A DNA stretch of 64,000 nucleotides from Epiperipatus broadwayi (GCA_028023455.1 JAQFVV010000002.1:33170001-33234000), one strand, 5' to 3'. Shown: positions 165 to 57,066, counted from the stretch's first letter. The notes: generated by a model from the sequence alone, not told the origin. A program made the numbers and translations.

Positions 165-1710
165 CTTTTCAAGTATATCAACTGTTCGTATTTAGCATAC
201 AGTCTAGTATATAAGACATTTCAAATAGTATTGTTCTCCCTTTTTCAAGTGGGCTGGCCTGAGCAGTGAATAGCATGGGAATTGAATGTAGACCTTTAGG
301 TTTATGAATATTAAATTTAAAGTAACCCTCAAACCAATTAATCTTTTCTGCCTAAGCGTCTCCTAATTTCTTCACTTTTTCTTAAGAGCAAGGTTAATTG
401 GTGGTTTCCAGACATTAGGTATTGTTGCACTAGGTTGGCTTAAGGAGATTATTTGCCATTATCATGTGAATAGCTTTTTTGAATATCTTATTTGTATTTT
501 TCCCTCGCTATTCAATATTTTTGTATTTTCCTAATTGAACATACATGGTTTGCTGCTTTATATATATATTCATTTTCTCTTTAGAATCATCAGTTTGTGC
601 TCTTTCAATTGCTTTTCAGTGGGACAACTTGTCTCACCAATATACATCTTTCCATATTCATATGGTATTTTATAGATGAAATTTTTGTTTTTCAGCATTT
701 CAAGTTTAGGCTTTGTAGTTTTTGGAAAGCTGTTGTGATGTTATACTGATTGCAGATTTTCCTTAATTTGTCTGCTATTTCTGCTATATATGAATATACT
801 ATAGTACCAATAATTATTATTTTTTGTATATATTTCTTTTTGTTGTCTGTCTAAGATATTGTTAATGATAGCTGATGGATAATCATTCTTTATGAGAGTA
901 TGTTTTATGTAAATTTTTTTTTTTTCCAAATCACTGGTTTTTGAATAATTTTTCTTTGTTCTGTTCCATTATTATAGTATAACTCTATGTTCTATATCTG
1001 TTGTGATTGGATGAATATGTTAAGTATTTTCCTACGAGCATAGGTTTTCTGTAAACTAATTTTGATTTTGCCATGAGGGAATCTTGTCACAGTAATATCT
1101 AAGAATGCCAGTTTTTGTTCTTGTTTTGAATCTATTGTGAATTTTAATTGAAGAGGGATTGTTGATGTGTGTCCAGAGCATATGTAAATAGCACTTATCA
1201 TCGACATAGCAAAGCCAAACTTTAAATAAGTCTAGTGTACTCTTTGTGGCTGTTGTTTCAACTTTTTTCCTGTAAATACTGCTAATCAGGAGTGATAAGA
1301 ATGAGCTGATACCTATACTTTGATTTTGTTGGAAGAATTGTTGTATTGAAAGTATATTATGTAGAATGTTATTAGTTCTATTGTGCTATCAACAGAAAGT
1401 GTTGTTTTGGGTTGGAAGCTATTACTATCATTTAATCTTTTCCTTACGATAGATACTACATTTGTGAATAAAGTTTCCACATCAAAACTTATCAATGTGC
1501 CAGTTCTTTCAATTTTTATGTACTTGATTAATTCTATAAAATGCATAGAATCCTTGACAAAGAATCGTGTCTTGTATGCCAAAGAACTAAGAACTTTGAG
1601 AAGAAATCTTGATAAGTTTTGGCAAGGTGAATTTCTAGAACCAACAATAAGTCTCAATAAAAATCTTGTGCCAATTTTTTTTTTAATTAAAGAGTAAAAA
1701 TAAGGATTTT
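165..1710 (-). mobile_element. Decayed Penelope-like (PLE) retroelement: RT + GIY-YIG endonuclease + 3' terminal repeat
   Basis: Minus-strand peptides: SFDVETLFTNV (PLE RT motif, ORF 1313-1657); KFTIDSKQEQKLAFLDITVTR (RT C-part, ORF 992-1207); HTLIKNDYPSAII (741-929); YKIPYEYGKMYIGET...KQLKEH (GIY-YIG, about 595-675). Many stops and frameshifts. 165-295 matches the solo repeat at 24655-24815. Confidence 0.9.
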
Positions 1711-2884
1711 TGAAATGAATTTAAACATCAGTAGACTCCAAATATAGATGATGAAATATGGTTGCAATTACTGGACTACTTGACAGATATATTTCTGATT
1801 TTAAATGAAGTTAATACATCTCTTCAAGGACTTAAAGTATGTATTTAACATTAGATATATGAGTTTCATATATATATAGTGTTGTTAGTGTCATACCTGG
1901 CAAGTTTTCTTGTTGAAACAATAGAAATATTAATTGTATCAACAGTGGTAATAAAGCCAGAGTTAGTTTTATGATATCTAAGTATTGAAAATCTAATTTT
2001 TTTAAATTTTGATATATAGAATGTGAAAACTATAAAAATTCTTCAAGACTGAATATAGGACAATGCTGATGGCTAAGAAATTGTCAAGATTTAAATTCAA
2101 TATAGTCAAGATAGATGACTGCAAGTTTTTTTGGTAGGACAAATCAACCAGTGAAAGGAGAATGCATGGTATTGGATTTACTGGAAAGTCTAATTTAGCA
2201 TCCTCTATTTTTAGAATCCCTTATTGCATCAATGAACGATTGATGATGTTAAAACTTGGGCTTGTGCAATGGTACTAATGATCATTTTATTAGTCCATAT
2301 GCTCCAATCTTAGATTTAGAGAATACAGCGAAAAAAAGCTTCTATTTTTTGCTGGATAGCTTATTACAGCAATACCATTTTTTAAAAAAAGAAATTTTTT
2401 TGTAATTGGAGACTTTAATGCATATAGTGTTACAAATGGTAGGCTTTGATTGATAGTTGTAGGAAATAAAGATATTGGTGCTATAAACTCAGTTTGTTCT
2501 TATTGAATGTTTACACAACACATGAATTGACTATCACAAGTACTTGGTTTAGGCAGAAAAATTGTTACAAAAATACGTAGATGTTTCACCCTCATAACCA
2601 TGACACTTAATTGATTACATTATAGTTATGAGTCGGAATACAAAAGAAGAATACGAACATGTGCAGATTGTTGAATGGATTATACATTAGTATATTCCAA
2701 GTTTAAAATGATAGATCATATTCACAAAGAATTAGATGTTTAAATAGTCAAAATAAGAGTCATAGATCACATGACCCAATTCTCTTAAACTTGTAAGCTA
2801 TAAACAATGAGTATTGCCAATTGCTCAACAAGCTTTGTGATAAGTGCTTAGCCAGAGAAATTATTTAAAATATCTGTCAGGAAA

Positions 2885-3068
2885 TCCCCCAAACCTCTAA
2901 CTATGGTTTGGGTAGCTTCAGACCCTAGATCTAAAATACCAATCCAAAGCCAGCATTTATCTAACAGTTATCTATTGAGTGGAAAATCTGAAAATATTTC
3001 AGACACCTACATGTCTTCAAACCCAGCTATCCAACTCAAATAGCTATATGGAGCTGAGATAAATTCTA
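2885..3068. repeat. Old dispersed repeat related to 13945-14110 (subfamily A2, retrozyme-associated)
   Basis: Shares 'cagac.ctagatctaaaatacca...ggcattta...aaaatctgaaa.tttcagaca.ct.atgtct.caaa...gctat.aact.aaatagc.atatgg' with 13950-14105. Confidence 0.6.
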
Positions 3069-3229
3069 TTAATTCTTAAATATCGGTACTAAAATTGCTA
3101 ATTTGGACTTTCGGGATGGTTATATTACTAAGGCATGGAATTTTCTTAGAGAGTAGTTATAGATTTAAATAAGTCTACTTGCAGGTTCATCGGTATTTCT
3201 GACAGAGATATTATTTGTGATTTAATTAA

Positions 3230-4680
3230 AAGGACAATGTGCGGCATTTTTTGCTTGTCTGAATAATAAATATGGAGCTTCACAATAAATATAGAAAATT
3301 AAAAACAAAAGTTCAATGATTGACGAAAAGATTTAAAAATGATTGATAAATTAAAGCTGCAAAGGAGATATAATGTCTTTAGATCTTTTTTTAATGCATT
3401 GAAAGCAATATATGGACTTGGGAAAATTTGTATTACAATCCTATAAATCAAAAATGGCACTTTCTGATATAATATCAATGACATTTTGAATAAGTGTTAG
3501 GAGTATTTTAATTACCTTTTGAATAATGATGTAAGAATTGAGATGTTGACCCTATCTTCATTTTATCTACTCATTTAAATTTGAACAAGATATCCAGCTT
3601 TAATGAAATCAATACATCTCTTTGTAAAAAAAAAAATGGATAGATTGTAGGCCCTGATGAAATAGCTGGAGAAGTTTTAAAACATAATGGTAATATGTTA
3701 GTTTCAATTTTAGAAATTTATGAACTCATGAAATTGTACCGTCTCATTTTAAAGACGATTCTATTGTTCCAATTTTTTAAAATAAAGGGAATATGCAAAA
3801 TTGCAATTATTATATCATTATTATCCATTAAGTACTTTAAGGATTTTGTTGAATAGATTATTTCTGATCATAGAAAAAAAGTCACAGATAAAATGATTAC
3901 CAGAGACTCGATGTGGTTTTAGAGAAACAAGAAACAAATGAAGAAAAAAAATCAAACCAAAGTGATTTATACGTTGATTTTTATTGATTTGGTCAAAGCA
4001 AATGGCCCAGTTAATTTAATAAATCTGACATTATCTGAAATTAGTTGGATTACACCAAAATTTATTTGATAATATATAAATAATTATCAGAGACTCAATA
4101 TTGTTTTACGGAATCAAAAAGCATATGTATATGATTTGTATTGCCAGGCAAATGAAAAAAAAGATCAGAAACACGAGTGTTTTTTATATTTTTTTTATTG
4201 ATTTGATTAAGACAAGTGATTCAATTAATTGAATATATCTGTGACATTGTTTGAAATTAGTTGATTGTTCACCAATGTTTATTTTGTTATACAGTTTCCG
4301 ACGGAATGAAAGGAAGTATTATTGTGATGAATGGAAAATTTGAGATAGGATTAAATAAGGATACGTACTTGCTTTAATATTTTTGATTCTTATGTCTTCG
4401 ACTTTTGGAATTGTTTATAGTTGCCTTAATGACTCAGATACCAAAATGTGGTACAGCTTTGATGGTGAAATTTTTAATTCGAATCTCCACAATTAATAAA
4501 CCAAACTGAATAAACCTTTACTTCACCAATGTTCGTATCTTTTTGGATTTTGAATTTATACTATGCTGATGATTTTGCTTTTTGCCAGCTCAAAAGATGA
4601 TCTATAAACTGTACTTAATGTTTTGAATGCAACCTATAAAAGTCTTTGGCTTTAAACTTTCTCGTTTGTTATGATGGATG
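3230..4680 (+). mobile_element. Decayed RTE-like non-LTR retrotransposon (RT domain)
   Basis: Broken-frame RT motifs: GPDEIAGEVLK (about 3650), KDDSIVPIF (about 3752), PETRCGFR (about 3900), FIDLVKA (about 3980), YYADDFA (about 4560). Confidence 0.7.
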
Positions 4681-4737
4681 AGTAATTAGTATGTGAGTGT
4701 TAGATATTGTATCAGTTTTCAATATCATATTATAATT

Positions 4738-4841
4738 GTATATTGGTGATTATTTATCTTTTCAATGTGCGTGATCAGGTGGGTCAGCAATATGAGATGG
4801 CATGGAGGGCTGACGGTCGTGTGAAAGTCTGAGTTTGAATC
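4738..4841 (+). repeat. Family B fragment (3' part, downstream of HHR cleavage site, ending in B-box)
   Basis: gtata|ttggtgattatttatcttttc...cagcaatatgagat...gtgaaagtctgagtttgaatc matches the reverse complement of 55575-55690. Confidence 0.7.
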
Positions 4842-5068
4842 TTTTCTATATTACATTATATACATGGAGGTGTGTAAGCCTGTACAGTGTATTAAATTAT
4901 AATTGTATTTATACAAGTTAAATTTCTACCAATAAATTTGCTATAAAATATTAAAGAATATATGTATTATTTTTTACATGGATGAAAAAATTCATTAATG
5001 TGAATTATTAGTAAAAGAATGCAAAAAATTTTACATCGTTATTTTCTTAAATATATGAATTTTACTAG

Positions 5069-5213
5069 ATCACAAATCAAAGAAGAAGAAAAACCCAAAC
5101 AGACTGAACAGAAAACAGATAGTGATACATTAAGGCAAGAAAAATTAGAAGGTCAACTTAATGAATATTATCACAAAATAGATGAGCTTCAGGACAGTTT
5201 GCAGGGTTTTAAA
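5069..5213 (+). CDS. Exon of an unidentified coiled-coil protein (SQIKEEEKPKQ...EKLEGQLNEYYHKIDELQDSLQGFK)
   Basis: ttttactag acceptor; AAA|gtaagt donor; open frame with heptad-like charged composition; phase 2 to 0, compatible with exon 13551. Confidence 0.75.
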
Positions 5214-7354
5214 GTAAGTTTATTTCTTATTTTATATTTTACTGATATTTTTATCAATTAATTTGAAAGTCCACAGGTTATAGCCAAGACCTTTTACAAT
5301 GATTGAGAAAAATTTAGATAATATTACAATAGTATATACGATGTGATTCTGGATTCTTAGCATTATTTTATTTTGACCAAGTAAACTGAACATATAATAA
5401 TAATTCATCACTCTTCTTTTATTGTAAATATATATTTATATATCGACATGTATTTAATATATGTATACCTTTTTGTCAGTATTTTTAGAGATATTTAAGT
5501 GTGCATATGTTTATAGTACTAATAAATAATAAAAATCATATACAACAGTTATATAAATATATTTCTAATAAATACATATTAAAAGCCTTTTTCAACATAT
5601 GGTTTTGTACCCTTTTTAAATGGTAAGCATCTGTTTTAATGTTAACCAATTATTGCACATTGAACACCATCTAGTGTTTTATAATGAAAATAAAATAACT
5701 ATAATAAAATAAAACCAATAAAATAAAATAAAAACTTCATATAGAGATCCAATATAACTTCAAAGAATTGACTCTATATCATAACAATATACAGAATTGG
5801 TTAACGTTAAAATAGTTGCCTAACATTGGAAAAGGGCATGAAACAATATGCTGAAAAAGACTTTATAGTGTAATTATTATTGATATATATATTGTAGTGA
5901 TGAGCTACAACCTGCCACACAATCCAATTATTTAAGACACTCTACCAATTGGAGCCTCATAACATATTTGCTTAACCAATAAATTGCCAAGCAAATTGTC
6001 ATAGTAATTTTTTTTTCTTTCCAACATATACATGTGTATAAACATCTTTTCATTTCTAAAGAAGTAATAAAAGCCATTAAATTACTAGGGAGAAACAGAT
6101 AGGTATATTAACACTGGAATAAAACGTATTATATGTTAATAATTGGGGATGACTATGAAAAAAAAAAACAAACTTACACATAAACTTAAAAAAAATAAAT
6201 AAATAAAAACAATGACTGAATTAAAATGTAAACACATAGAAACCATTTATGGAAATGAAATTTAAAATATTTATAAATTATTATTTTTTATTTATAATCC
6301 CATTTATTTATATTAGTCAGTTAAACAATAGGAAATGTCAAGGTTAAAATGCTTAAAATAACTTCACGTGACATACAACGCAGTATTAATTGTTATAATT
6401 GTCTTCTGCATTCGAAGATAGAACATTATTATTTTTTTCTGCTTAAAAAAATAAATTTGAATACAAAATGGATGTGAATGTTCGAATTTAAATATATAAA
6501 TATTTTTTTTAAATATTAATCAAAATGATCAAAACCTGAAATTTCAAAGCAATCGTTTGAAAGGAAAGAAATAATTTGAAAGTAAGAAGATTTAAATTAT
6601 TTGCTGATTAGACAAATTTTAGTTAAATTTACGCGTTGCAGTAATATTCAATAAATAATTGTTTTGATATATAATAATATCGTCATTGAAATCTTGAGAA
6701 GCAAATGAATCAATAAATATATATTATTTTTATATCATGATTGCTTGCTGAAAAGTTTGTACCATGGGGTAATAGTACGTCATCAATAAAGCCATGAAAG
6801 TTTAAAGATTTTATCTGCCCATTTAGGAGAAATTTGAAAACCATCTTTGCTTTAAATAAAATGTCTAAACAAATCCAAGACAGGATAATTGGAGAACATT
6901 ATTATTTTTTGACTCAGACAAGAAACTTCTATTCTTCGTGGGAGCAAAACCTCATCTCCATTCCTAGGAATTTATTTAGCAAATGAGCAATTTCCAGCAG
7001 ACTTATCGAACTTTAATTAACATAATGGGATAAGAATTGTGATTTTTGTTTTATTATTTTGTCTATTGTAAATTTTATGTATTATTTTCGTTTCTACAAA
7101 TGGAAGGTAATGTGTATAATTTTAGAGAAACTGTATGAGAGTAATAAGGGGGGAAAATTAGATTTATATTTTTTATCATTAATTGCATAAGAATAAAAAA
7201 ATTAATAGTTCTGACTGATTTTTGACAACATATGGGAAATTAAGAGTTCAAAATACAGCAAAACTCTCCATATAGTAGTGCCATCTTGTGCTAACAAGAG
7301 CAATCAATGGATGCCAGAAGGCTTGTGCATAAAATCCCTATCTAGTGCCTACTC

Positions 7355-7413
7355 ATCCAATATCCCCAGACTAGTTTCTGGCTTGTGGCCTTCATCAGTG
7401 AGGAGCCTTGGAT
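7355..7413 (-). ncRNA. Type I hammerhead ribozyme (family A)
   Basis: Minus strand: AUCCAA ggc UCCUCA CUGAUGA a GGC cacaa GCC a GAAA C UA G UC / UGGGGA ua UUGGAU. Conserved core, stem I with internal loop, stem II, palindromic ACUAGU stem III, GUC cleavage triplet. Confidence 0.9.
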
Positions 7414-7819
7414 CTGAGAGCACTGCACCTAGATCTTAGGATCTAATGCAACCCTCCAGCACCCACCTTTTAACTCTATTTAACTACAAAACTATGAGAA
7501 TGAAATTGAAAACACTATTAATATTTTCAATCCAAGCTCAATAGCTTATATAGTCATATGGGTCTGAACTCAATTCAGTACCCATACATTTTGGTGTCTT
7601 TGGCTCTTTAACAACCATAGCCACCACTATCCTATTAGGCAGGATTGGTGTTAAATCACTAAACATCACATGATCACTATCTCATACTAGCACAATAATT
7701 GTTATAAACAATTCAAAATACAGCAAAACTCTCCATATAGTAGTGCCATCTTGTGCTAACAAGAGCAATCAATGGATGCCAGAAGGCTTGTGCATAAAAT
7801 CCCTATCTAGTGCCTACTC

Positions 7820-7878
7820 ATCCAATATCCCCAGACTAGTTTCTGGCTTGTGGCCTTCATCAGTGAGGAGCCTTGGAT
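7820..7878 (-). ncRNA. Type I hammerhead ribozyme (family A, second monomer)
   Basis: Same sequence as 7355-7413, shifted by 465 nt. Confidence 0.9.
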
Positions 7879-8631
7879 CTGAGAGCACTGCACCTAGATC
7901 TTAGGATCTAATGCAACCCTCCAGCACCCACCTTTTAACTCTATTTAACTACAAAACTATGAGAATGAAATTGAAAACACTATTAATATTTTCAATCCAA
8001 GCTCAATAGCTTATATAGTCATATGGGTCTGAACTCAATTCAGTACCCATACATTTTGGTGTCTTTGGCTCTTTAACAACCATAGCCACCACTATCCTAT
8101 TAGGCAGGATTGGTGTTAAATCACTAAACATCACATGATCACTATCTCATACTAGCACAATAATTGTTATAAACAATTCAAAATACAGCAAAACTCTCCA
8201 TATAGTAGTGCCATCTTGTGCTAACAAGAGCAATCAATGGATGCCAGAAGGCTTGTGCATAAAATCCCTATCTAGTGCCTATCTTGTTAGCACAAGATGG
8301 CACTACTATATGGAGAGTTTTGCTGTATTTTGAATTGTTTATAACAATTATTGTGCTAGTATGAGATAGTGATCATGTGATGTTTAGTGGTTTAACACCA
8401 ATCCTGCCTAATAGGATAGTGGTGGCTATGGTTGTTAAAGAGCCAAAGACACCAAAATGTATGGGTACTGAATTGAGTTCAGACCCATATGACTATATAA
8501 GCTATTGAGCTTGGGTTGAAAATATTAATAGTGTTTTCAATTTCATTCTCATAGTTTTGTAGTTAAATAGAGTTAAAAGGTGGGTGCTGGAGGGTTGCAT
8601 TAGACCTAAGATCTAGGTGCAGGGCTCTCAG

Positions 8632-8688
8632 ATCCAAGGCTCCTCACTGATGAGGCCACAAGCCAGAAATAGTCTGGGGATATTGGAT
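8632..8688 (+). ncRNA. Family A hammerhead, variant with 1-nt deletions
   Basis: tcctca CTGATGA ggccacaagcca GAAA tag TC tgggga; lacks the A after the core and C15.2. Confidence 0.6.
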
Positions 8689-9088
8689 GAGTAGGCACTA
8701 GATAGGATTTTATGCACAAGCCTTCTGGCATCCATTGATTGCTCTTGTTAGCACAAGATGGCACTACTATATGGAGAGTTTTGCTGTATTTTGAATTGTT
8801 TATAACAATTATTGTGCTAGTATGGATAGTGATCATGTGATGTTTAGTGGTTTAACCCAATCCTGCCTAATAGGATAGTGTGGCTATGGTTGTTAAAGAG
8901 CCAAGACTACCAAAATGTATGGGTACTGAATTGAGTTCAGACCATATGACTATATAAGCTATTGAGCTTAGATTGAAAATATTTTTTGTGTTTTCAATTC
9001 ATTCTCATAGTTTTGTAGTTAAGTAGAGTTAAAAGGTGGTTGCTAGAGGGTTGCATTAGATCCTAAGATCTAGGTGCAGTGCTCTCAG

Positions 9089-9141
9089 ATCCAAGGCTCC
9101 TCACTGAGGCCAAGCCAGAAACTAGTCTGGGGATATTGGAT
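9089..9141 (+). ncRNA. Family A hammerhead, degenerate (core deletion)
   Basis: tcctcactgaggccaagccagaaactagtctgggga: CUGAUGA box and loop II partly deleted. Confidence 0.45.
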
Positions 9142-11683
9142 GAGTAGGCACTAGATAGGGATTTTATGCACAAGCCTTCTGGCATCCATTGATTGCTCTT
9201 GTTAGCACAAGATGGCACTACTATATGGAGAGTTTTGCTGTATTTTGAATTGTTTATAACAATTATTGTGCTAGTATGAGATAGTGATCATGTGATGTTT
9301 AGGGAAATTAAGAGGTAAGACATTTTAATATTATCTTATAGTAAGCAAAACTCAATGAGAGATTTTTTTTCATTTATTATTAATTAAGCTTACTTTTGTA
9401 TTGCTTTTATAAATCAATGATTTATAACCATTGATTTATCTGGACAACAGAGATTTTTTTGTTGTTGTTGTTGTTATGTTTGTATACATATTTTAAATTA
9501 GCCAGCTAAAATCGAAATCACATATACATATTATAATTTTACAGATTCGTTGTTATAAATAGTTAGTCAAGTACATGAGCTTCTACCATTGGGTTTAGGG
9601 CAAGGGTTTTATTTTTATTAATATCATTATAGATATCGATATGGTAGAATTTCATCCTGACAAAATAAATTACATGTATCAGATTTAAGTGTTATTCATA
9701 TTTTTTTTTTTTTAATCAATAAAATGTTTATATAATTCGTTATTTTAATCTGGTCTCTAACTCATCATTATTTCAATATCCACCATCAGCTTTATAGTTC
9801 TTCATTATTTACATACCCGTTATAAAGATTATTATCTTATTTAGTTTTACACCTATTAATATTATTACTATGATAGAGGAAATACATATACATATTTAAG
9901 TCATTTATTATAACTTTTTGTACATATACATTTATACTGCACATACATATATATTTTTATATATCTTATGCTTAATTGATTTTTGGTAATTAATTATCAC
10001 CTATATAGAGGTGCAATAACTACTGTTAGTGTGATCTCCTTCCCTGATAAGAGAGCTCAGATAATTACTTCCTGAGTTTGAATACTGTGGTATAACGCGG
10101 CTAGAAAGGGGTGAGAATTGGATGAACTGACCCAAATTGTATCTAAGTTAATAAAAATAGGTAGAGCTAATCTATTGGAAGTAGGTACAATCATAGGTTA
10201 GGTATTTCATTGCGTAATCACTTGCATCCTATCCAAAGACCCAAAGTCCAACCATAGTAAGATGCGCTCCCCCTATCTCTTATGGAATCCACCAGCTCGT
10301 TATATATATATTACTTCGAATATAAGACACCCCCAAATTTAAGATGCATATATGTACTTAAATAGGAAACTAATGTAAATACAATAAACTTGCCTAGTTT
10401 ATTGCGAATCTTCTTCAAATATATAGTACTTTCACTTTCAGAACTTGAAATCTCATCTTCACTACTTCATCAGGGCGCATCATCTTCGGGCCATTTAAAT
10501 TGTAGCCGAACATTATAATTTCTTTGTCAATTTGCTTTCGTGTAAAAGTACATTTTTCTATTAAAACCTGAATCATTCTTCTAAAATAATTAATATTTTT
10601 ACAAATATTTTCTGAAAACAATAAATGTGTAAAGAAGATTCTATAACGTACGTTTTCACTTTAAAAATCAAAAGGAAGCTATTGGAACTATCAAAATTTC
10701 GACAGGTGCTCTCTCATGTACAGAACAACAATTAAAGGGGTAAACCGCTGGCCTATATGTTGGCCTTTATTTAGGTATTTGAAGTATAACATTTATAAAA
10801 TAATTGACTTTGGATAATATATAGTTCATAGTACTCTGAAAGGGATGCTTGAAGTGCATTCTATCCGATTTGAAACTACAAAACCTAGAAGAAAAAGTCT
10901 TGGAAGCAATGAATGGATTTTTCCTCATTAATGAATGTTATCTTCACCTTATCCTAGAATCATCTACTGGAAGATTGAGTAGTCAATAAACACCAGATGT
11001 TATAGTGCTATGCAATTCCCATCTCCAGAATGGTTTCTGCTTGAGGACTAGGATTCAAAATTGGATCTAATGCATTTATGCATCTAGTTAGATGTGTAAG
11101 TGTATTAGTTTTCAATAATGAAGGCAGAGAAGACCAAAGCCAAATCAGAAAATGGAGATTTTACAGCATTGTACCATTTGATGTCCATTGATTAACCCAG
11201 AAAGTGAGAGTGACGTGCAGTGTGGTTATTGGTATTAGTAAAAACCATACAAATTGTATGTACAATTAAATCTTTACTTACAAAAATCATGCATTAAACA
11301 TGGCATTCCGATATCTTTTCTAGTTTCATGATTTCTTTAAAACTGATTTATTTCAATCTTCCATTTGCACAAAGTTTTGCTTACTTATTAGCTTCGCCTG
11401 TAACATTTCTTTGATTACGTTGAAGCTAACCAGCTCAGCGGTTAAACTTTTGATTGCAAATTGTAAAAATTCTGAAAGTATGTTATAGTATTTTTTAAGA
11501 TAATTAAAAAATATTCGAAAATCTCTATAAATCTAATTTAGTGGAAAAAAAATTTAAAAAAATATCAGTATTTTGTAAAAGACAAAATCTGCGACTGTTT
11601 TTGAAAAATATAAATTTATAATAAACTTCATAAGGCGACTGTTTGTTAAATAGTTGTGATTCAAGAATTCAAGGCTTTCATCA

Positions 11684-12245
11684 TCAGTGAGCATTATCAC
11701 CTTTGATCTGAGAAGCAGCCCACACTATGGCTAGTACTTCTTTTTCAGTAACCATATAATTTATTTCTGGACCCTTTAAGAGATGGCGAATGAAGTAGAG
11801 CACTCCGGCTTGGCCGTCCTCCTGGATTTGGGATAGGGTCACCCCTAATCCATAGCCACTACTATTTGTTTGTAAGATAAGGTGTTTATTCAAATTAGGA
11901 AATCTAGCATTACTTGCTCCAAAAATACTGTTTTAATTGTAGCAAATGCATCATCTTGGTCTTTAGCCCAGTTCCATCTTCCATCTTTTCTGATCAATTT
12001 TAATAACGGTTCCATGTGTGGTCGGCAAATTTGGGATAAAAACGATTGTAAAAATTACAGATTAGACAACCAGCTCTTGAAATACAAGCTAAATAATGGC
12101 AAAAGTGAATGGAGGGTAGTAATACCGAAATTTAAAAACTCACTCAATATGTACATTATATGAGCACTATGGGCCCACAAAACTGAACAATTAATGAAAA
12201 ATTTGTTTTACTAGCCTAGAATGTATAGCGACATTGTAAAAAAAA
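11684..12245. mobile_element. Ty3/Gypsy pol remnant (RNase H on -, integrase zinc-binding region on +)
   Basis: Minus: LQTNSSGYGLGVTLSQ...NYMVTEKEVLAIVWA (RT-RNaseH). Plus: WRVVIPK...HYGP.K...LFY*PRMYSDIVK (integrase H2C2-like). Confidence 0.7.
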
Positions 12246-18306: not shown

Positions 18307-18547
18307 GTATATATGATTATGAACTGTATACTGATATCCACAATTAAGGTTTAAAACATATTTGGATTAGGAATTATCTCTAATTTTATAAATGATTATA
18401 AATAAGCATTAATGTATTTATCTGAATTAGTTGGTGTTAAAATGGTGGCTGCAGAAAGTTTGATGCTTGTAAATTAAATTGGAATAATTTGATATTGATA
18501 AATATTGAGCAGATGTTGAAGATATATGTAAAAGATTAAGACTTCAG

Positions 18548-18589
18548 CCAACTGATGAGTGCTGGTTCAGCATGAAATATGCATCTTGG
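18548..18589 (+). ncRNA. Type I hammerhead ribozyme (family B)
   Basis: CCAA CUGAUGA GUGCUG guu CAGCAU GAAA U augc A UC / UUGG; intact core, AUC triplet. Confidence 0.8.
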
Positions 18590-19082
18590 GAATCAGTTGT
18601 CTTTTTCAGATGTCTTTATTCATATGTTTTAAGGATGCGTGATGAAATGGAGATTTAAAATATATCTTATATATGTATAAAATATACATACACACATATA
18701 CATATATATATATATGCAGAGAGAAAAGAGAAATAGAGTAATGGTGTGTGTTTTAAAATACTTTTTTGCACAAGGATTGTTATGTATATGTAAAGAAAAA
18801 AGAATGTTTGTGTATTTTAATTGTTTTTTAAAAATTGAAGATTATTTAAGTTTATTTTTAAAATTTGTATTGGCATCTTACTTAAATACCCCAAAATTGA
18901 TGATAAATTTTAGAAAAAAAATTCTGATGATTGTAAAATACCTTTGGTAATTAGATTTAAAACTGTTGTTGTTGTTTTGATAATATTTTAAAAATAACTA
19001 TGTCAAAAATTATAATTTTATTTGAACTGGCATTGGAAATTTAAACTTGCAGTAATTTAGTTGTTTGTTTTTTTTTTTGCAG

Positions 19083-22299: not shown

Positions 22300-23067
22300 A
22301 TTTAAATAATACATTAGCAATTTAAAAGTATTGCAGTTTGTAATGTTATAATTGACTATTTATTAGTCTTCATTACATGGACATGTTTATTTCATGTTTA
22401 AAGAGGTTTATTTAAACTTCATTGTATCAATATTTCACACTCTGTAGTCAAGTTGCAATCTTTAAGTGTCCATATATATTCATTGGACCATTAGTAAGAG
22501 TGGATTTCCACTCTTATTATTAAAGGGAGAGAGGTTGCCTTGACAACAGTGAGAAATATTGATTACTATCTATGTTAGCATGTTTAAGTGATGACTGGTT
22601 TCTAAAGGTTTTATATTGAAATGGATAAATTATAAACTATCTTTTAATTTTGCTGTTGAATGTAATGATGGAAAGAAATCATTATATAGACATGCATTGT
22701 TCTTTCATTGTTCAATCTGACAAAGGTCTGGTTTACAATATATCCAGCAATTTAAGTATGTATTGATTACATTTATGATCTTGTTATTGTATTTTAAAAT
22801 TTTTCAGCACATTCTTAAATGAAACTTTTCTAATTGCTTTATATTGCATTGACAGGATTATATTTTATTTTTTCATAGTTCTGTAACAAAGTATAGATCA
22901 TATTTTTGTCTTGTATTCAGACAGCTTATTAACTTTTTATATATATTTCCTCCATTCCTACATCAATTATTTATTTTCGTCTTACTCTTTCTTTGATTAT
23001 ATAATAATTAAATTAGTTCTATCTATTATAGTCATATCTCAGTTGATTCTATCACTATTTAATATAT

Positions 23068-23600
23068 TAAACCACTAAAGATTACATGATCACCATTTCT
23101 TATGCTTGCTCGTAATTGTTATTAAAACAGGCAAAACTCTCCACACAGTAGTGCCACTCATTGCAAGCCAGAGTAATCAATGGATGCCAGAAGGCTTGTT
23201 CATAAAATCTCTATCTAGTGCCTACTCATCCAATATTCCCAGACTAGTTTCTAGCTTGTGGCTTTCATCGGTGAGGAGCCTTGGATCTGAGAGCACTGCA
23301 CCTAGATCTTAGGATCTAGTTTTGTAGTTAAATGGAGATAAAAGGTGGCTGGTGGGGGGTTGCCTTTGTCAGTGAGGAGCTTTGGATCTGAGAGCACTGC
23401 ACCTGCAGTGCTCTCAGAAACTAGTCTGGGGATATTGGATGAGTAGGCATTAGATAGGGATTTTATGCACATGCCTTCTGGTATTCATTGATTACTCTGG
23501 TTGGCACAGGGTGGCAATACTGTATGGAGAGTTTTGCTTTGATTATAAACAATTATGTGCTAGTATAAGATAGTGATCATGTGATGCTTAATGGTTTAAA
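23068..23600. mobile_element. Family A insertion, head-to-head with several template switches
   Basis: Left part in array orientation with HHR 23228-23286 (-, CCGAUGA variant); short switched segments at about 23317-23415; right part carries gaaactagtctgggga on +. Confidence 0.88.
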
Positions 23601-25285: not shown

Positions 25286-25806
25286 TAGGCACTAGATAGG
25301 GGTTTTATGCACAAGCCTTCTGGCATCCATTGATTACTCTGGCTTGCACTGAGTGGTACTACTATATGGAGAGTTTGGTCAGCTTTAATAACATTTATGA
25401 GCAAGCATAAGAAATGGTGATCATGTGATATTTAGTGGTTTAATACCAATCCTGCATAATAGGATAGTGGTGGCTATGGTTATTAAAGAACCTAAGACAC
25501 CAAAATGCATGGGTACCGAACTGAATTCAGACCTATATGACTATATATGCTAATGAGTTTGGATTGAAAACATTATTGTGTTTTCAATTTTATTCTCATA
25601 GTTTTGTAGTTAAGTAGAGATAAAAGGTGGCTGCTGGAGCATTGCATTAGATCCTAAGATCTAGGTGCAGTGCTCTCAGATCCAAGACTCCTCACTGACA
25701 AAAGCCACAAGGTAGATAGGGATTTTATGCACAAGCATTCTGGCATCCATTAATTACTCTGGCTTGCATTGAGTGTCACTACTATATGGAGAGTTTTGCA
25801 TGTTTT
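25286..25806 (+). mobile_element. Family A, about 1.1 monomer, HHR inactivated by deletion
   Basis: Full monomer body; at about 25680-25712 ctcctcactgacaaagccacaagg jumps to tagataggg, removing GAAA-stem III. Confidence 0.88.
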
Positions 25807-32059: not shown

Positions 32060-32405
32060 AACAGTAGTGCCGCAGATGCAGGAAGGTTTGTATATAAATC
32101 TCTATCTAGTGCCTTTATCCCCAAACTAGTTTCTAGCTTGTGGCAATCATCATTGAGGAGCCTTGGATTTGAGAGCACTGCACCTAGATCTTATGCGACC
32201 CTCCAGAAGCCACCTTTTACCTTATTTGCTAGTCTGCGGATATTGGATGAATATTCACTAGATAGGATTTCATGTACAAACTTTCCTGCATCCATTGATT
32301 ACTCTGGCTTGCACCGAATGGCACTACTGTATGAAGAGTTTTGCCTCTGTGTAAACATTTTGTGTAAGCATAAAGAATGATGATTATGTGATGTTTGATG
32401 ATTTA
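32060..32405. mobile_element. Family A insertion, head-to-head, degenerate HHR
   Basis: Left: actagtttctagcttgtggcaatcatcattgaggagcc (core mutated). Switch at about 32230. Right: gctagtctgcggatattggatg...gagttttgcc. Confidence 0.8.
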
Positions 32406-32680
32406 TATATCTGTGAGTGCCATACTTACAACTAGGATTTGAATCCAGCTTGAGTGAATTTTTTTTCAAGACTTTGGCTCTTTTCCTCAGGTAGCTGGCT
32501 CATAACCTATTTAACTAATCATCCGATATTAGGAAGTAAGTAAGATATTTAGTAATTCTTAGACAGAGAGTAAATCAAGGATAGAAAACTGCTTCCACAT
32601 TCTTTATGAGAGGTTGTTGGAGAGCTTTTGACCTACAGTGGGATATTAAAATGCCTGAATTACCTTGTTTTTAACCATTA

Positions 32681-33290: not shown

Positions 33291-34425
33291 ATTCATGTAT
33301 ATATATATTGCAACTACAATTATATTTTGCATTCAAGAATTATAAATTAAATATAGTCAATTTTGAGCATAATAAAATGTAATATAGAATTGATAAAGAT
33401 TGGAGAAACTTTAGGATGGAAACAAATAGTACAAAAAATTAAAGCGATGAAAATAGGTAAAAGGGACAAAAATTAAGAGCAAGAACTTAGACAGGAAGTT
33501 ATAGAGCTTATTTACGCTTTGCGTAAGCAGATATCGAAAATAGTAATCATTAAAATTATTCCAAACAAAGTTTTAATATGTGTTGGAGATTATTCTGCAA
33601 ACCTTAGATTGAAAAGGCTTTTTAAATGTCTTAATTAAACTGTAGCTTTATATGAAGAAAAAACATGAACCATTACCAAAAAACTTTGCATATTTGAATT
33701 TTTCAGGAAAATGGAAAAGATAATTTGGAAAGAATGTCAGAAATGTGCAATGGTTGAAATCGGTGAATAAAATTTTTTTAAGAAAAAATGTGAAGGTAAA
33801 GAAAAATTGGATTTAATATACACTTGGAGACAGGGGAATTATGAAAGTTGGTGTTGGGAGTATAGAAAATATAAGGAAAAAAGAAATAAGAGTTGATTAA
33901 TAATCTTAATAAGGAAAATAGTTATGAATATTTAAAAAGCAGATCAATAAAATGTTTGAAGAATATGATTGGATACAGGGGATCTGCTTTTTGGCATTGG
34001 CAGATAACTGATAATAATGAGAATGGTGATCAACTTGAGAATAAATTTTGGTAAAAATAATGGTTAAACATTTTATTATTGCCTAGAAAGTCAGCATTAA
34101 ATTGGAACAAGATTTAAGAACTAGATAACTATATTTACTTAGGCTAGTTAGTATCAGCTAAAGCAAGTACAATTTGAGAAAATATTTAAAAAATGTTTCA
34201 ACCAATATGCTTTTATCTATTTAAGTCATAATTGTAAGATGTGGAATTTGGATTTAATGACAAAACAAAAAATTACAAATAATTCACATGATTGCCATTT
34301 TTTATGCTTGCTCAAGCTGTTAAAACAGACAAAACTCTCCATACAGTAGTGCCACTCAGTGCAAGCCAGAGTAATCAATGGATGCAAGAAGGTTTGTGCA
34401 TAAAGTCCCTGTCTAATGCCTACTC

Positions 34426-34484
34426 ATCCAATATTCTCAGACTAGTTTCTAGCTTGTGGCTTTCATCAGTGAGGAGTCTTGGAT
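34426..34484 (-). ncRNA. Type I hammerhead (family A, AGC/GCU stem II variant)
   Basis: Intact core; compensatory stem II pair relative to 7355; one mismatch in stem I. Confidence 0.75.
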
Positions 34485-34871
34485 CTGAGAGCAGTGCACC
34501 TAGCTCTTAGGATCTAATGCAACCCTCCAGCAGCCATCTTTTACCTTATTAGCTGCTACATGGAGAGTTTAGATTCTGTATAAACTGCTTGTGTAAGCAT
34601 AAGAAATGATGATCATGTGATACTTAGTGGTTTAAAACCAATACTGTCTAATAGGATTACGGTGACTGCAATTATTAAAGAACCAAAGATACCAAAAACT
34701 ATGGATGCTGCATTGAATTCAGATTTATACAACTATATAAGTAATGGGCTTGAATTGAAAACATTATTATGTTTTCATTTTGCACTTAAAGCTTTATAGT
34801 TAGCTAATAAGATAAATGGTGGCTGCTGGAGGGTTGCATTAGATCCTATCATCTAGATGCAGTGCTCTCAG

Positions 34872-34930
34872 ATCCAAGGCTACTCACTGATGAAAGCCAC
34901 AAGTTAGAAACTAGTCTGGGGATATTGGAT
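34872..34930 (+). ncRNA. Type I hammerhead (family A)
   Basis: Intact core; G.U in stem II; one mismatch in stem I. Confidence 0.7.
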
Positions 34931-35171
34931 GAGTAGGCACTAGATAGGAATTTTATGCACAGACCTTCTTGCATCCATTGATTACTCTGGCTTGCACTGG
35001 TGACGCTACTATATGGAGAGTTTAGCTTCTGTGTAACAGAATAGGGAAAAAGCATCCTAGAAAAGAATTATATCAATATATGTTGATGAAATTTACTAGA
35101 TTGTTACATCAAATAGCTATTTGTGGAAAAACATTGGAGAAGTTTTTGCTTTACAGTAAGCAAATAAAATT

Positions 35172-35415
35172 AAAAAAAGGAAGCAAAAATTCAGTTAATT
35201 TTCAACTAGCATAAAATATTGTATGAAGAAAAGAAGGAATATGAACACATTTTTAAATAAACCATTAAGAAGAATTGAATATTTAGAATAAAATAAAAAA
35301 AAGGAAGCAAAAATTCAGTTAATTTTCAACTAATATAAAAGATTATATGAAGAAAAGAAAGAATATGAACACATTTTTAAATAAACCATTAAGAAGAATT
35401 GAATATTTAGATTTT
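35172..35415 (+). repeat. Tandem duplication, unit about 123 bp
   Basis: aaaaaaaggaagcaaaaattcagttaattttcaacta...gaatatgaacacatttttaaat...ccattaagaagaattgaatatttaga occurs twice. Confidence 0.85.
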
Positions 35416-41484: not shown

Positions 41485-42742
41485 TCTCAGTTTCTGTCTT
41501 TACTAATTTTCATATTTCTCTGATCTCTATTTACTTTTATAATAATGGTTGTATACACTTACCATATTTCCAAAAAGTATCATCTGGGGAAAAGAGAGAT
41601 ATATTTCCTCATTTCCATCTCAATCTCTAATTTTTTTAGAAACAGAATAAGTAATAATAGTAACAATGTTTCAGCTTGATTTCATCTTTAATTCTCATTT
41701 GTTATTCATATAAATTATCTCTATATATTCTCATCTTTCCCTTATTTTTCTACAATCTACTTCTATTCATCCTACCATATGTCTTTTCTATATCTAAAAA
41801 TGCTATAAATAAATGCCTTTTTTTTTCCTGCATTTCATTCATCTCATTGAAACTGATATTTCAATTAATTTGCTGATTAATTCATCACCCAAAGTTTTTT
41901 TTTTTGTTTTTCCTTTATTTTTTTATTATTTTTGCATTCTTTTTCCTCTGCATTTAACAATATATCAGCCTTTTATATTTTCTTTGTTATACATCCAAAA
42001 TTTTACACAATCCTCCATTTTTATCTTTCGATTTCTGCAGTTAATTTCTTATTAATTTCATCCCGTTTCTGTCTTAATTCTATTCTAGTTTTTTTTAAAT
42101 AGCTATTCCATCTGACCTTTAACTTATTCTATTTGTTTTTTAAAGCTCCTTTATATTCTTAGATGATCTTTTTTCTTTTACATTTTGCAATATATTTGTT
42201 CTCCAGCTTATTTTGACATAATTATAAATTAATATTCTCTTGCAACATTCTTCACCGTATTCTTCCATCGTTCATAATTATTACTTCATCCTTTTTTTTC
42301 TCATAATTATCACAAACTTCTCCTTTCCCCCTTTCCTTAGTCTTCATTATTTAATCAATAGTGTTATTTGAATTGTGACTTGATCATGTAAACTTCTCAT
42401 TGTATACTCAGATTCTTTGCAGTAATTCATATTTTACCATTAATTTTATTAATATGACCATATCACTTATAATCGTTATTTTACAATTTTCTTTGAAAAG
42501 TCTCTTTCCACTTTTTCACAACTTCTTTATATTGTTATATATCTATTTCCTTCAGTCCAATTTCAATCTTATGCACACACATTCTTACAATTTCTAAATA
42601 GAAAAAAAAAATCTTATTGTCTTCATTCATTTATTCTCTTTCATTCACATTTTTTAAAATATGGTATTTTGATTCTCAAATCTTTTTTCCTATAAAAATT
42701 TTTTTAACTCCAATTCTTATATCTTTTTATTTTTGCATATTT

Positions 42743-43299
42743 AAACCATTAAACATCACATGATCACTATCTCTTATACTAGCACATAATTATTTATAAA
42801 CAAGGCACAGGGTGGCACTACTGTGTGGAGAGTTTTGCCTTGTTTATAAACAATTATGTGCTAGTATGAGATGGTAGTCATGTGATGCTTAACAGTTTAA
42901 CACCAATCTTGCCTAATAGGATAGTGGTGGCTATGGTTGTTAAAGAGCCAAAGACACCAAAATGTATGGGTGCTGAACTGAGTTCAGACCCATATGACTA
43001 TAGAAGCTATTGAGTTTAGATTGAAAATATTTTTGTGTTTTCAATTTCATTCTTATAGTTTTATAGTTAAGTAGAGAAAAAAGGTGGTTGCTGGAGGGTT
43101 GCATTAGATCCTAAGATCTAGGTGCAGTGCTCTCAGATTCAAAGCTCCTCACTGACGAAGGCCACAAGCCAGAAACTAGTCTGGGGATATTGGATGAGTA
43201 GGCATTAGATAGGGATTTTATGCACAAGCCTTCTGGCATCCATTGATTACTCTAGTTGGTACAGGGTGGCACAACTGTATGGAAAGTTTTGCTTTGTTC
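42743..43299. mobile_element. Family A insertion with short 5' inversion and 10-bp TSD
   Basis: ttgcatattt at 42733-42742 and 43300-43309; inverted piece 42743 to about 42807, then about 1.05 monomer. Confidence 0.92.
43137..43195 (+). ncRNA. Type I hammerhead ribozyme (family A)
   Basis: UCCUCA CUGACGA a GGC cacaa GCC a GAAA CUAG UC / UGGGGA; only the variable position 7 differs. Confidence 0.85.
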
Positions 43300-43853
43300 T
43301 TGCATATTTCTGATAATTTTTATATTGTCATTTTATCTTTCTTTTAAATATTATTTTTTTATAACTATTTCCAATCAGCATATTTAAAAAATTCCTTTAT
43401 ACCCTTATATCATTTTCCACCATTTTTCCTATCTTTCCCAAAATACAAACATCTTTTTATTTTGTGTTTTTCCATAATTAAATCTCATGTCCTTTGTTTA
43501 GTTTTAATTGATAATAAAATTTATTGTGATCATGTGATGTTTAGTAATTTAATTCACCTAGTGTTTTACTCTTCCTTTCCAATAAATGTAACCCATCCCT
43601 TTTAAATGAATTTTTATTAAACATTTTCAAACATCTAAAAAATTAATGCAACTTTTCTCTCATAAACATTTTAATCTTACTTATATTATGTCCAGAAATT
43701 ACTGTTCTATTCAGTTTTGGCAATAACATTGATTATGATTTCAAAATCCTTATCATTTGTTCATAGAGTCTTTTCAATTTAGAAATAGTGTGTAATATGT
43801 TAAAAATCCTCTGGTTGGTTAGATTAAGTAAAGATTTTAATATTCGGTTTCAG

Positions 43854-44509: not shown

Positions 44510-45375
44510 TACTTCAGAGCCATCTATTGTAAGCTTAAGTAATAAGTGAACAAAAGATGAGATAGCTTTTATATCCACATCCCTAGATGACTATTTAGTA
44601 TCCATTGATTACTCAAATTTACAATAGATAGCTCTGAAATAGAGTTTGATATTTTTGTTAGTATTGCATTTGAACCATAAAACATTTTAAGATGTAAACT
44701 TATTATTAGCAATAACTCTCTAGACACTAGTGCCACCCAGTGCAAGCCTTAATAATCAGTTTGTGCATAAGATCTCCATCTAGTGACTACTCATCCAATA
44801 TTCCCAGACTAGTTTTTAGCTCATGGTTTGCACCTAGATCTAAGGATCTACTGCAATCCTTCAGCATCCACCTTTTATCTATTTAGTTAACCATAAAACT
44901 ATGATTACTAAGGCTTGCACGGGATGGCACTATAGTTTGGAGAATTTGTTACTGCTAATAGTAGCTTGTCTAAGCATAGGAAATGGTGATCATGTGAAGT
45001 TTTGTTGGTTTTATACCATTTCTGCTTTTGGGATGAACCAAGGACACCAAAATGTATAGTTGCTGTACTGGGATCAGATCTATATAACTATCAGGCAAAT
45101 GAGCTTGGATTGAAAACATTCATGTGTTTTCATCTTGAGCTCCTAGCTCTATAGTTAGTTGAAAGGTGGCTGCTGGAGGATTGCATTAGATCCTTAGATC
45201 TAGGTGCAGTGCTCTCAGATCCAAAGCTCCTCACTGGTGAAAGCCACAAGCTAGAAATTAGTCTAGGGATATTGGATGAGTAAGCAGTAGATGGAAATTT
45301 TATGCACAAGCCTTCTTCAATCCATTGATTCTTAAGGCTTGCACTAGCTGGCACTACTGTATGGAGAGTTTGCTA
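44510..45375. mobile_element. Older family A insertion, head-to-head, HHR 45219-45277 mutated (CTGGTGA)
   Basis: Left minus-sense part 44716 to about 44907, then plus-sense monomer; 44510-44645 carries the variant inverted ends also seen at 37470. Confidence 0.8.
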
Positions 45376-45539
45376 TATCTATTGAAAATATGGATTTTAA
45401 TATGAAATCAGAACTGTATTTTTAAATATAGAAACATCTATATTGGTAATATTGAATTTAATTATTGCCTTCTATTACAGTAAAAGAACAATAAAATGAA
45501 CACACTTTTGTGCACTTTATACAATGCGCACACACATAG

Positions 45540-53420: not shown

Positions 53421-53800
53421 AGGGATTTGAACTCAAACTTTTCAAGCAACTTGCAACTATTCACACTCTCTCAAACTACTGATACGCATGACCACACATG
53501 TAGAAAAGACAAATAATCACCAATAAACGTATTTTGTGCAGAACCAGTACTCATCAGTTAGTCCAGATGATCATCTCTCGCACATATATATAATCAGTGC
53601 TCAGTTTATATTAAGATAGCAAATCTTCATACTTTAATGGACAGGCTTCAATCTACTTCAACCTCCAATTCTTCAGCCATCCATACCATTGAAAATCTGA
53701 TGATAGAATATCTAAATCCCATACTGATGCCAGTATTGTTGTTATGGCCATGTTGACCTCAAGTCACTCTGACCCCTCATGTATAGGACAGTATCCATTT
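53421..53800 (-). mobile_element. Family B element (HHR at about 53518-53562, G12 mutated)
   Basis: Reverse-complement match to 56700-57066 along about 370 bp. Confidence 0.82.
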
Positions 53801-55574: not shown

Positions 55575-55722
55575 GGGGGGGGGGTTTGAACTCGGACTTT
55601 CACATGACCCTCAACTATCCACGCTATCTCATATTGCTGATACCCTCGATCACATACATGTCGAAAAGATAAATAATCACCAATATTCGTATTTCGTGCT
55701 AAACTAACCCTCATCAGTTGTG
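55575..55722 (-). mobile_element. Family B fragment with HHR (55678-55722) and B-box
   Basis: Minus: caa CTGATGA gggttagtttagcac GAAA T acga A TA ttggtg...gatagcgtggatag...gagttcaaacc. Confidence 0.78.
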
Positions 55723-56699
55723 TAAAGTAGAGTGGATAAATTGCTTATGAATATCATTGAAAATTGAGAAATAAATCATTCGAAGTATATCAGTTAGTGA
55801 TGAAAATATATTTAGAAATGATTGGTTTAATATTTAAATTATTTTAGTTTTATCAGAGGTGAAAAGGTATTTTTGATCTACATTAATTTTAAAATCGTGC
55901 TCATGTCAAAAATGAATAATATTTAACAGTAGGGTCATATCCGAATTAAAATTTCACTGTGCTTGATTAATCTTACTTATAAAAGTTGATAAATTATTTT
56001 TTTCTCTTACATCTTTGTTTTTAATTTAATCTCTACATTTTTAATGCCACGTGACATAAAATTTTGAAGAATCATTGGCTGTATAGTATTTTTAAAATGA
56101 TCCTGCAAAAATGTTTATTTATATATGAGTTAGTTTTGGGGTCAGGCAAGTAAGTCTTGATGCAAATTCAGTTTATAAACCAGTGCTAAGGGGAATATAA
56201 AATCGTCTTAATTTGAATTCCAACTATGAAAGATGCTAAGCCCAATATTGACAAACCTTATAGAATAAAATCTAGTAATGGTAACGATAGGTTCATCCCC
56301 TGTAATATTATATAATACCATCAGCCTCAAATCCATATTCTATTAATCTTTTTATTTATCTATTTCCTAGCTAAGTTAGATATCAATTTACCTAATATTA
56401 TTGGATGACTGGATCATCTATCTACCTGAGAAAGTTCTATTCCATTTAATATTTTTTTAACAATTGTATGTCTTCTCTAAGCACAGTTTATTCTAACATA
56501 AATATTTAGAATTATTCATTCTGGATAAATAGAAAAGTAAAAGAAACTAACTTTGTGCCTATATTTTGAAAGAGGTCTTTATTAAAAATTGCTCTAATAC
56601 AAAAGATGGAATAAACAAAATTATACTCATATTAGGCTTCAGGTAGAAGAGTGCCTGGTATTTCAAATCTTACATATTAAGCCTATATTCTGTCCATCC

Positions 56700-57066
56700 C
56701 TCTTCTATGTATTTAAATGGAGGGGTCAGAGTGACTTGAGGTCAACATGGGCATGATAATATTGACATCAGCATGGGATTTGGGAATTCTATCATCATAT
56801 TTTCAATGGTATGGATGGCTGAAGAGTTGGAGTGGATTGAAGGCTGTCCGTTAAAGTGTAAGGATTTGCTATCTTAATATAAACTGAGCACTGATTATAT
56901 ATATATATGGGAGATGGCAGTCTGGACCAACTGATGAGTGCTGCTTTAGCATGAAATACCTATATTAATGATTATTTATCTGTTCTGCATGTGTGTGGTC
57001 ATGTGTATCAGTAGTATGAGATAGTGTGGATAGTGAAGGGGCTTGAAAGTCTGGGTTCAAATTCCC
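56700..57066 (+). mobile_element. Family B element (HHR 56925-56970, B-box at about 57052-57064)
   Basis: accaa CTGATGA GTGCT gcttt AGCAT GAAA T acct A TA ttaatg...gggttcaaattccc. Confidence 0.82.

Follow-up and report, generated by a model that had tools for sequence, protein, structure and literature searches.

Which enzyme mobilises the retrozymes of animals, a recently recognised source of abundant small circular RNAs, is still argued from indirect evidence, and insertions that retain their target-site duplications let both ends and the central junction be read exactly. An insertion of this kind, at positions 7247–9301 of a 64,000-nt stretch of the Epiperipatus broadwayi genome (GCA_028023455.1, JAQFVV010000002.1:33170001-33234000; hereafter the window), raises the question of what the element is and how it was copied. 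It is built from units that each carry a type I hammerhead ribozyme motif, here called family A, and is probably a recent insertion of a non-coding ~454–465-nt hammerhead retroelement, that is, an animal retrozyme of the kind lacking long terminal repeats (non-LTR), copied by the enzyme of a Penelope-like element (PLE).

A single insertion with two opposed arms

The 2,055 bp at 7247–9301 form a single insertion of two opposed multimeric arms, flanked on both sides by a perfect 13-bp target-site duplication. The 13-mer, GGGAAATTAAGAG, abuts the left end at 7234–7246 and is found again directly after 9301, at 9302–9314, and it is because this identical sequence adjoins both ends that the whole is read as one insertion; elsewhere in the window an exact 13-mer at the spacing of the duplication occurs at 0 of 61,744 positions. 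The left arm (7247–8281), defined by Tandem Repeats Finder (TRF), blastn and terminus alignment, comprises 2.2 units of 465 bp; its ribozyme (sense) strand is the minus strand, with the sense 3′ end at 7247 beside the duplication, a terminus of the class named T1 below. The right arm (8282–9301; TRF and blastn) holds 2.2 inverted units, with its sense strand on the plus strand and the sense 3′ end at 9301, near the terminus class named T2.

The preliminary description of this DNA had reported a 465-bp monomer repeated head to tail at 7247–9301. This holds for the first array (7247–8281, period 465, 2.2 copies, 100% matches), whereas the second (8282–9302, period 454, 2.2 copies, 95% matches) has a consensus that is the reverse complement of the first, the two arrays being joined head to head. 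In a blastn comparison of the unit with the window, the same order was recovered as unit positions 1–465, 1–465 and 1–105 on the plus strand, then 53–1, 465–1, 465–1 and 465–410 on the minus strand. The sense 5′ ends of the arms meet at 8281/8282, at unit positions 105 and 53, which are unrelated, and the joint is blunt and without microhomology. The element has a GC content of 38% and, in agreement with the earlier statement that it contains no meaningful open reading frame (ORF), its longest ORF is 76 aa.

Judged by the perfect 13-bp duplication and the identity of the left-arm units, the insertion is very young, and family A is present at high copy number, both of which fit the earlier proposal of an active or recently active, high-copy family. 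The right arm differs from the left-arm unit at 29 places, including 16 deleted bases and 12 substitutions, as against 0 differences in the 1,035 bp of the left arm. The outer unit accounts for 21 of them, the inner unit for seven and the tail for one; the central 53 nt have none, and only two are shared between the units. Since both arms entered in one event, these differences point to a heterogeneous or different template, to error-prone synthesis, or to an unpolished assembly of the inverted copy.

At the centre of the insertion, the head-to-head junction (8196–8315) forms a near-perfect long hairpin, transcription across which would yield long double-stranded RNA. Matches of this segment to microRNA-precursor models were sub-threshold on both strands (mir-458 scored 41 bits, where 59 are required), and arise because the centre of the insertion is palindromic.

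The family A hammerhead

Two intact type I hammerheads, identical to one another, lie on the minus strand of the left arm. The first (7355–7415) is defined by sequence, a descriptor scan, folds and a conservation profile, with a cut predicted after C7369 (7369/7368); the second (7820–7880) by sequence, descriptor scan and fold, with a cut predicted after C7834. The descriptor scan places the intact motifs at 7398–7369 and 7863–7834, 465 nt apart, and the two predicted cut sites bound a 465-nt monomer. The hammerhead string originally quoted for the locus is thus present as described, at 7415–7355 and 7880–7820. Its extension to every monomer does not stand, as only two of the four motifs are intact: in the plus-strand right arm, alignment shows that in the motif at 8632–8688 one A following CUGAUGA is absent, as is the C of helix III, with loss of the palindrome, and that in the motif at 9089–9141 a 6-nt deletion has taken part of CUGAUGA and of helix II. 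If the right-arm differences are assembly errors, these two damaged hammerheads may be intact.

Read along the left-arm minus strand, the motif begins with the distal helix I strand AUCCAA, the internal loop GGC, the proximal helix I strand UCCUCA and CUGAUGA; it continues through A, GGC, the loop CACAA, GCC and A to GAAA and CUAG; and it ends with UC, the predicted cut, UGGGGA, UA and UUGGAU. The order is that of a type I hammerhead, in which helix I is open while helices II and III are capped, and every conserved core nucleotide is present. In helix I, 6 bp adjoin an internal loop with a distal stem beyond it; helix II has 3 bp flanked by an A·A, and helix III has only 2 bp (A-U and C-G around UA) within the palindrome ACUAGU. 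The usual G10.1-C11.1 pair is replaced by the A·A, formed by the A after A9 and the A before G12, both of which are conserved.

With a type I descriptor, the window gave six intact motifs, of which five belong to family A, as against a mean of 0.02 in 100 shuffles. At some 300 times the chance count, the family A motif is no chance match. Exact-pattern scans for the hammerhead core in metagenome and viral contig collections gave no match, nor did a literal search for the core strings in literature text.

Conservation of the motif was assessed more widely, family A being contained in 16 public runs from at least 11 coded organisms. For the conservation profile, contigs of four runs, each from a different organism (418 to 7,468 contigs per run), were aligned to the motif, giving 59 evaluable positions. 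Nine of the 11 core sites (C3, G5, A6, A9, G12, A13, A14, A15.1 and U16.1) stayed below 3% variant depth in all four organisms, and the most variable site was N7, the sole free core position, with U to C at 43, 47, 10 and 4% in the four runs. Next in variability were the two partners of a single helix II pair, with G to A at 17, 26, 13 and 27% and C to U at 10, 27, 13 and 13%, respectively, corresponding to an exchange of G:C for A:U. The comparison of core with non-core variability gave a Fisher p of 0.0045, and the trend was kept within the A/T and G/C classes.

The same exchange is seen within the window, where the compensatory change in stem II noted in the preliminary description is confirmed by alignment, with GGC/GCC in four copies and AGC/GCU in three; counted by distinct sequence, three have G:C and five have A:U at the covarying pair. 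No second double-changed helix pair was found among the window copies. Older window copies carry core-killing changes (U4C, C3A, A6G and G8A), as would be expected of retroelement copies decaying after insertion. Taken at the level of sequence, the family A motif has the core conservation and helix covariation of a type I hammerhead.

Folds of the monomer and the dimer

The short helix III bears on how such a motif could act, since with only 2 bp the family A hammerhead would need a partner copy. Folded singly, the motif is no better than shuffles (z = -0.39). When two 71-nt copies were co-folded, the minimum-energy state was a domain-swapped double hammerhead with a 6-bp helix III, at -41.8 kcal/mol versus -19.1 for each copy folded alone, and predicted thermodynamics thus favour the double hammerhead over lone motifs. 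The 465-nt RNA from cut to cut is predicted to fold into a rod at -164 kcal/mol, as against -119 ± 5 for shuffles (z = -8.7), in which helix I extends into a ~60-bp helix pairing the 5′ and 3′ ends. In this the monomer resembles the "highly self-paired" retrozyme RNAs, which have been circularised in vitro by RtcB ligase (PMC7229834).

Arm termini and other insertions of the family

The outer ends of the arms fall at two places in the unit. T1 (…GUUUUGC…) lies 111–122 nt downstream of the predicted cut, and T2 (…GGUUUAA) about 183 nt downstream. Directly 3′ of each is a hairpin, on the minus strand at 7697–7713 for T1 and at 7623–7651 for T2; both are predicted, and neither is significant against shuffles. 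The firm evidence on termini comes from the two insertions bounded by duplications, that at 7247–9301 and a second at 42741–43296 (plus strand; blastn, descriptor scan and terminus alignment). The latter is flanked by an 11-bp duplication with one mismatch, TT[T/C]TTGCATAT, at 42730–42740 and 43297–43307, and consists of a 63-nt inverted 'tail' arm ending at T2 followed by 1.07 sense units ending at T1, with an intact hammerhead at 43152–43181. In both insertions T1 is the end point of one arm, and the second arm stops no more than 5 nt from T2, and it is because the arms start at these two sites that a tail of 61–71 nt is present at one end only.

The related copies listed in the preliminary description were all recovered, blastn confirming family A at six further locations in the window, and the twin-arm layout recurs at five more window loci, with a different central junction at each. 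An older twin-arm insertion at 23067–23599 (blastn and alignment) has both outer ends at T2 and a hammerhead with a U4-to-C change. Another, at about 34277–35027 (blastn, alignment and descriptor scan), retains two intact hammerheads of the AGC/GCU type, at 34469–34440 on the minus strand and 34887–34916 on the plus strand. The remaining copies, placed by blastn and terminus alignment, lie at 25286–25799, at 32075–32406, where the right arm ends at T2 (32406), and at 44761–45378. An initial impression that most arms end at T1 was set aside after re-alignment, being partly an alignment artefact of subfamily divergence in the tail.

The segment between the two termini is also distinctive in the contig data. 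Summed contig depth at 7672–7760 and 8156–8199, which cover the T1–T2 tail and the unit junction, is 100- to 1000-fold below that of the hammerhead region, and the tail differs between subfamilies, with, for example, 11 nt present at 7247–9301 that are absent at 42839/42840. Either no other part of the family varies as much as this module, or the majority of copies fail to extend across it.

Relationship to animal retrozymes

The features by which retrozymes are recognised (PMC7229834; bioRxiv 10.64898/2026.07.22.740005) are largely those of the locus. At least two consecutive tandem units each carry a complete type I hammerhead, and the element is non-coding, low in GC and devoid of LTRs, and its target duplication exceeds 4 bp, although no dedicated search for a primer-binding site or polypurine tract was made. 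The unit of 454–465 nt is at or just above the ~150–450 bp quoted for retrozyme monomers. With the non-LTR retrozymes of coral, mussel and axolotl, and with newt satellite 2 (PMC7229834), family A shares a tandem array whose units measure a few hundred bp and contain one type I hammerhead apiece, as well as its non-coding character, low GC, target duplication and strongly self-paired monomer; a further common trait is the helix III of 1–2 bp with a palindromic loop, by which a ribozyme acting as a dimer is implied, as it is for amphibians. A non-canonical pair in the position of the A·A is also known from the active axolotl HHR_Amex2, which has U·U there (PMC7229834).

There are also differences. 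The 465-nt unit exceeds the 170–400 nt quoted for retrozyme RNAs, and the A·A replaces the 10.1–11.1 pair. For coral, mussel and axolotl, northern blots and RNase R treatment have demonstrated that tandem repeats with type I hammerheads give circular RNAs (PMC7229834); in family A, cleavage and circles are predicted. The non-coding retrozyme reading of the preliminary description is accordingly borne out by its sequence features, while self-cleavage and the circle are inferred. Twin inverted arms and a one-sided tail, as seen in family A, are not reported in the published retrozyme descriptions (PMC7229834).

Among other hammerhead repeats, Schistosoma Sm-alpha and Dolichopoda pDo500 are likewise short, high-copy, non-coding type I hammerhead repeats, dispersed or in tandem; their helix II and loop sequences differ from those of family A, and no sequence similarity to family A was found anywhere in the literature text searched. 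Family A is a further member of the known retrozyme kind and not a new kind, and its main value is as a test case for the link between retrozymes and Penelope-type elements. A short interspersed nuclear element of the type dependent on long interspersed nuclear elements was also considered and rejected, as the element has no poly-A or simple-repeat tail.

Relationship to Penelope-like elements

PLE insertions are characterised by partial tandems, an adjacent inverted, 5′-truncated copy and, optionally, a 30–40-bp tail at one end (PMC8557442). This anatomy is found at 7247–9301 and 42741–43296, and also at the older twin-arm loci. In biochemical work, a PLE protein in purified form was found to nick both strands of DNA and to extend them, reverse transcription beginning at two neighbouring sites inside the RNA, 111–118 nt into the ORF; with the hammerhead cut site 26 nt into the ORF, these start sites lie about 85–92 nt downstream of it (PMC11167929). 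Family A shares with PLEs the partial tandems, the adjacent inverted and 5′-truncated copy, a tail at one end only, AT-rich targets, apparent synthesis from both target strands and a pair of internal start sites situated about 100 nt downstream from the hammerhead.

The ribozymes themselves show both likeness and difference. Canonical metazoan type I motifs have helices I and II of 6 and 4 bp, respectively, and a helix III of 1–2 bp with a palindromic loop of 2–4 nt, and are active as dimers in tandem repeats, and an extra nucleotide after A9 occurs in Penelope-associated and viroid motifs (PMC4209133). Family A has this extra nucleotide and the palindromic helix III in common with PLEs, whereas the proportions of its helices I and II (6 bp and about 4 bp) are those of the canonical metazoan motif and not of the minimal PLE motifs, in which helix II is long and helix I short. 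A further difference is that family A, unlike PLEs, has no ORF for a reverse transcriptase or GIY-YIG domain, in the element or in the window.

A 2026 preprint has derived animal retrozymes from PLEs by phylogeny and co-occurrence (bioRxiv 10.64898/2026.07.22.740005). By a term search of the preprint, 'inverted' and 'TSD' occur only in another context and 'tail' is absent, and it therefore appears not to use insertion anatomy.

A proposed model for mobilisation

In both arms of the insertion at 7247–9301, the strand running 5′ to 3′ from the flank into the element is antisense to the ribozyme, which is the polarity of cDNA and the layout expected if both 3′-OH ends of the target primed inward synthesis. 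The target was opened with a 13-nt stagger. Each arm exceeds two units, and the template was therefore multimeric or circular.

A mobilisation cycle can be proposed on this basis. Source arrays would be transcribed as multimers, in which neighbouring ribozymes, their helix III being only 2 bp, may join as a double hammerhead by pairing of their ACUAGU palindromes; this would cut after GUC and free the 465-nt monomer. The ~60-bp extension of helix I could keep the ends of the monomer together, allowing a host ligase of the RtcB type to circularise it, a step for which the chances appear even. A PLE enzyme encoded elsewhere in the genome would then reverse-transcribe the multimer or the circle into new sites: both 3′-OH ends of the staggered target would prime inward DNA synthesis, and synthesis would start at two internal sites of the template, T1 and T2.

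A more specific claim, that the locus cleanly records, in genomic DNA, a two-strand, target-primed reverse transcription of the Penelope type that copied retrozyme RNA from two discrete start sites, is advanced tentatively, and with slightly less assurance than even odds would give. It includes the proposals that the start sites lie just 5′ of the predicted hairpins and that synthesis ran for more than two units. Were it confirmed genome-wide, the anatomy of insertions would connect retrozymes with PLEs, a line of evidence missing from the published arguments, which use phylogeny and co-occurrence, and the RNA module recognised by the enzyme would be defined. Young, high in copy number and common to several related organisms, family A is a convenient system for asking whether PLE enzymes copy retrozyme RNA, which start sites are used, and whether cleavage by a ribozyme with an A·A and a helix III of 2 bp depends on dimer formation. 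As a natural variant of the hammerhead, the conserved A·A, placed between core and helix II, would also merit kinetic study.

Several observations weigh against an insertion of retrozyme RNA by a PLE enzyme, or against parts of the cycle just outlined. Concerning the ribozyme, an A·A takes the place usual for G10.1-C11.1 and may affect catalysis, and in 9–19% of copies the palindrome of helix III is broken by a U-to-C change, which speaks against a strict need for dimers. The Rfam hammerhead models, named in the preliminary description as a check, did not bear the motif out, giving no family A match at the gathering score in the whole window, and none at E<=10 on 2.6 kb or on the 91-nt motif; for genome annotation, this means that the whole of family A is overlooked by these models. 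Concerning the enzyme, Pfam found no PLE reverse transcriptase or GIY-YIG domain among the window ORFs of at least 65 aa outside family A loci, and the 61–71-nt tail is about twice the 30–40 nt of described PLEs. Concerning the RNA, motif-region depth in two runs is 10^4–10^5 versus 14–54 in the flanks, these being assembled contigs from runs whose RNA label was guessed, and the high value could reflect expression or DNA carry-over from a repeat of thousands of copies. Contigs of 463–470 and 938 nt fit one and two units, although genomic tandems would give the same lengths, and no molecule ends at the cut site were reported for the assembled contigs. Finally, the purified PLE uses unprocessed RNA, its hammerhead mutants insert normally, and RNA-seq of that system gave no reads ending at the cut site (PMC11167929); the hammerhead is thus dispensable there, and a circular-RNA step may not belong to mobilisation at all.

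Alternative explanations

These last observations lead to the alternative that survives best, a Penelope-type element without a circular-RNA stage, whose tandems would come from linear multimeric transcripts or from template jumping, like the pseudo-LTRs of PLEs. The hammerhead would then only trim transcripts or assist the enzyme, and 'retrozyme' would be a structural label. Besides the purified system, two features of the locus agree with such an element: the predicted cut site (unit position 122/123) coincides with no arm terminus or central junction of the window, and the full units of the right arm differ from one another (7 and 21 differences from the left unit, 2 shared), unlike what single-circle rolling copying would give. 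Against it stand the circular RNAs of coral, mussel and axolotl, and the long predicted helix in which the ends of the family A cut-to-cut monomer lie, an arrangement that would suit ligation; the right-arm differences, moreover, are deletion-rich and may be assembly errors. An origin without circles is considered unlikely on balance, but it is a serious rival, because no termini fall at the cut site and because the hammerhead is dispensable in the purified system.

Assembly error, taken further, offers another alternative to a retrozyme inserted as two arms, namely that the right half (8282–9301) is a fold-back chimera of long reads and the real locus a simple tandem array. The contrast between the right arm, with its 16 deleted bases and 12 substitutions, and the unblemished left arm would be in keeping with this, and unpolished long-read consensus typically shows deletion-rich differences of this sort. 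An artefact would not, however, account for a right arm that ends at another unit position than the left and is then followed by the second copy of the 13-bp duplication, nor for the twin-arm layout of five other window loci of differing ages, and an inverted adjacent copy is a described feature of PLEs (PMC8557442). A chimera is accordingly regarded as highly improbable.

Least credible of all is a fold-back DNA transposon or a plain satellite with arms of tandem sub-repeats, its hammerhead incidental or a dead relic, for although duplication-flanked inverted arms of tandem repeats are superficially fold-back-like and an Rfam hammerhead match is absent, the outer ends differ (unit position 1 versus about 406) and hence are no true terminal inverted repeats, the central junctions vary from locus to locus, the motif count is far beyond chance, and the core is conserved while one helix II pair covaries over thousands of copies in several organisms.

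Other features of the window

The window also contains a second hammerhead family, B, with no sequence similarity to family A. At 18546–18591 on the plus strand its motif combines CUGAUGA and GAAA with a helix II of 6 bp and a helix III that lies inside the palindrome AUGCAU, and gives a sub-threshold match to Rfam Hammerhead_1 (17.1 bits, E = 0.067, threshold 34); related copies lie at 53496–53559 and 55656–55728 on the minus strand and at 56927–56958 on the plus strand.

The Pfam survey of ORFs described above returned two matches only. One is an intact-looking 506-aa transposase ORF of the hAT family at 57635–59155 on the minus strand (Dimer_Tnp_hAT, E = 3e-16), whose Atlas neighbours are ZBED-like. 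The other is a short ORF at 11684–11893, also on the minus strand, encoding an LTR-type reverse transcriptase-RNase H (E = 5e-14), which represents a decayed Gypsy-like remnant 2.4 kb from the insertion. Short tandem duplications, unrelated to family A, are found at 59828–60217 and 35163–35411, with units of 207 and 124 bp, respectively, that are 95–99% identical.

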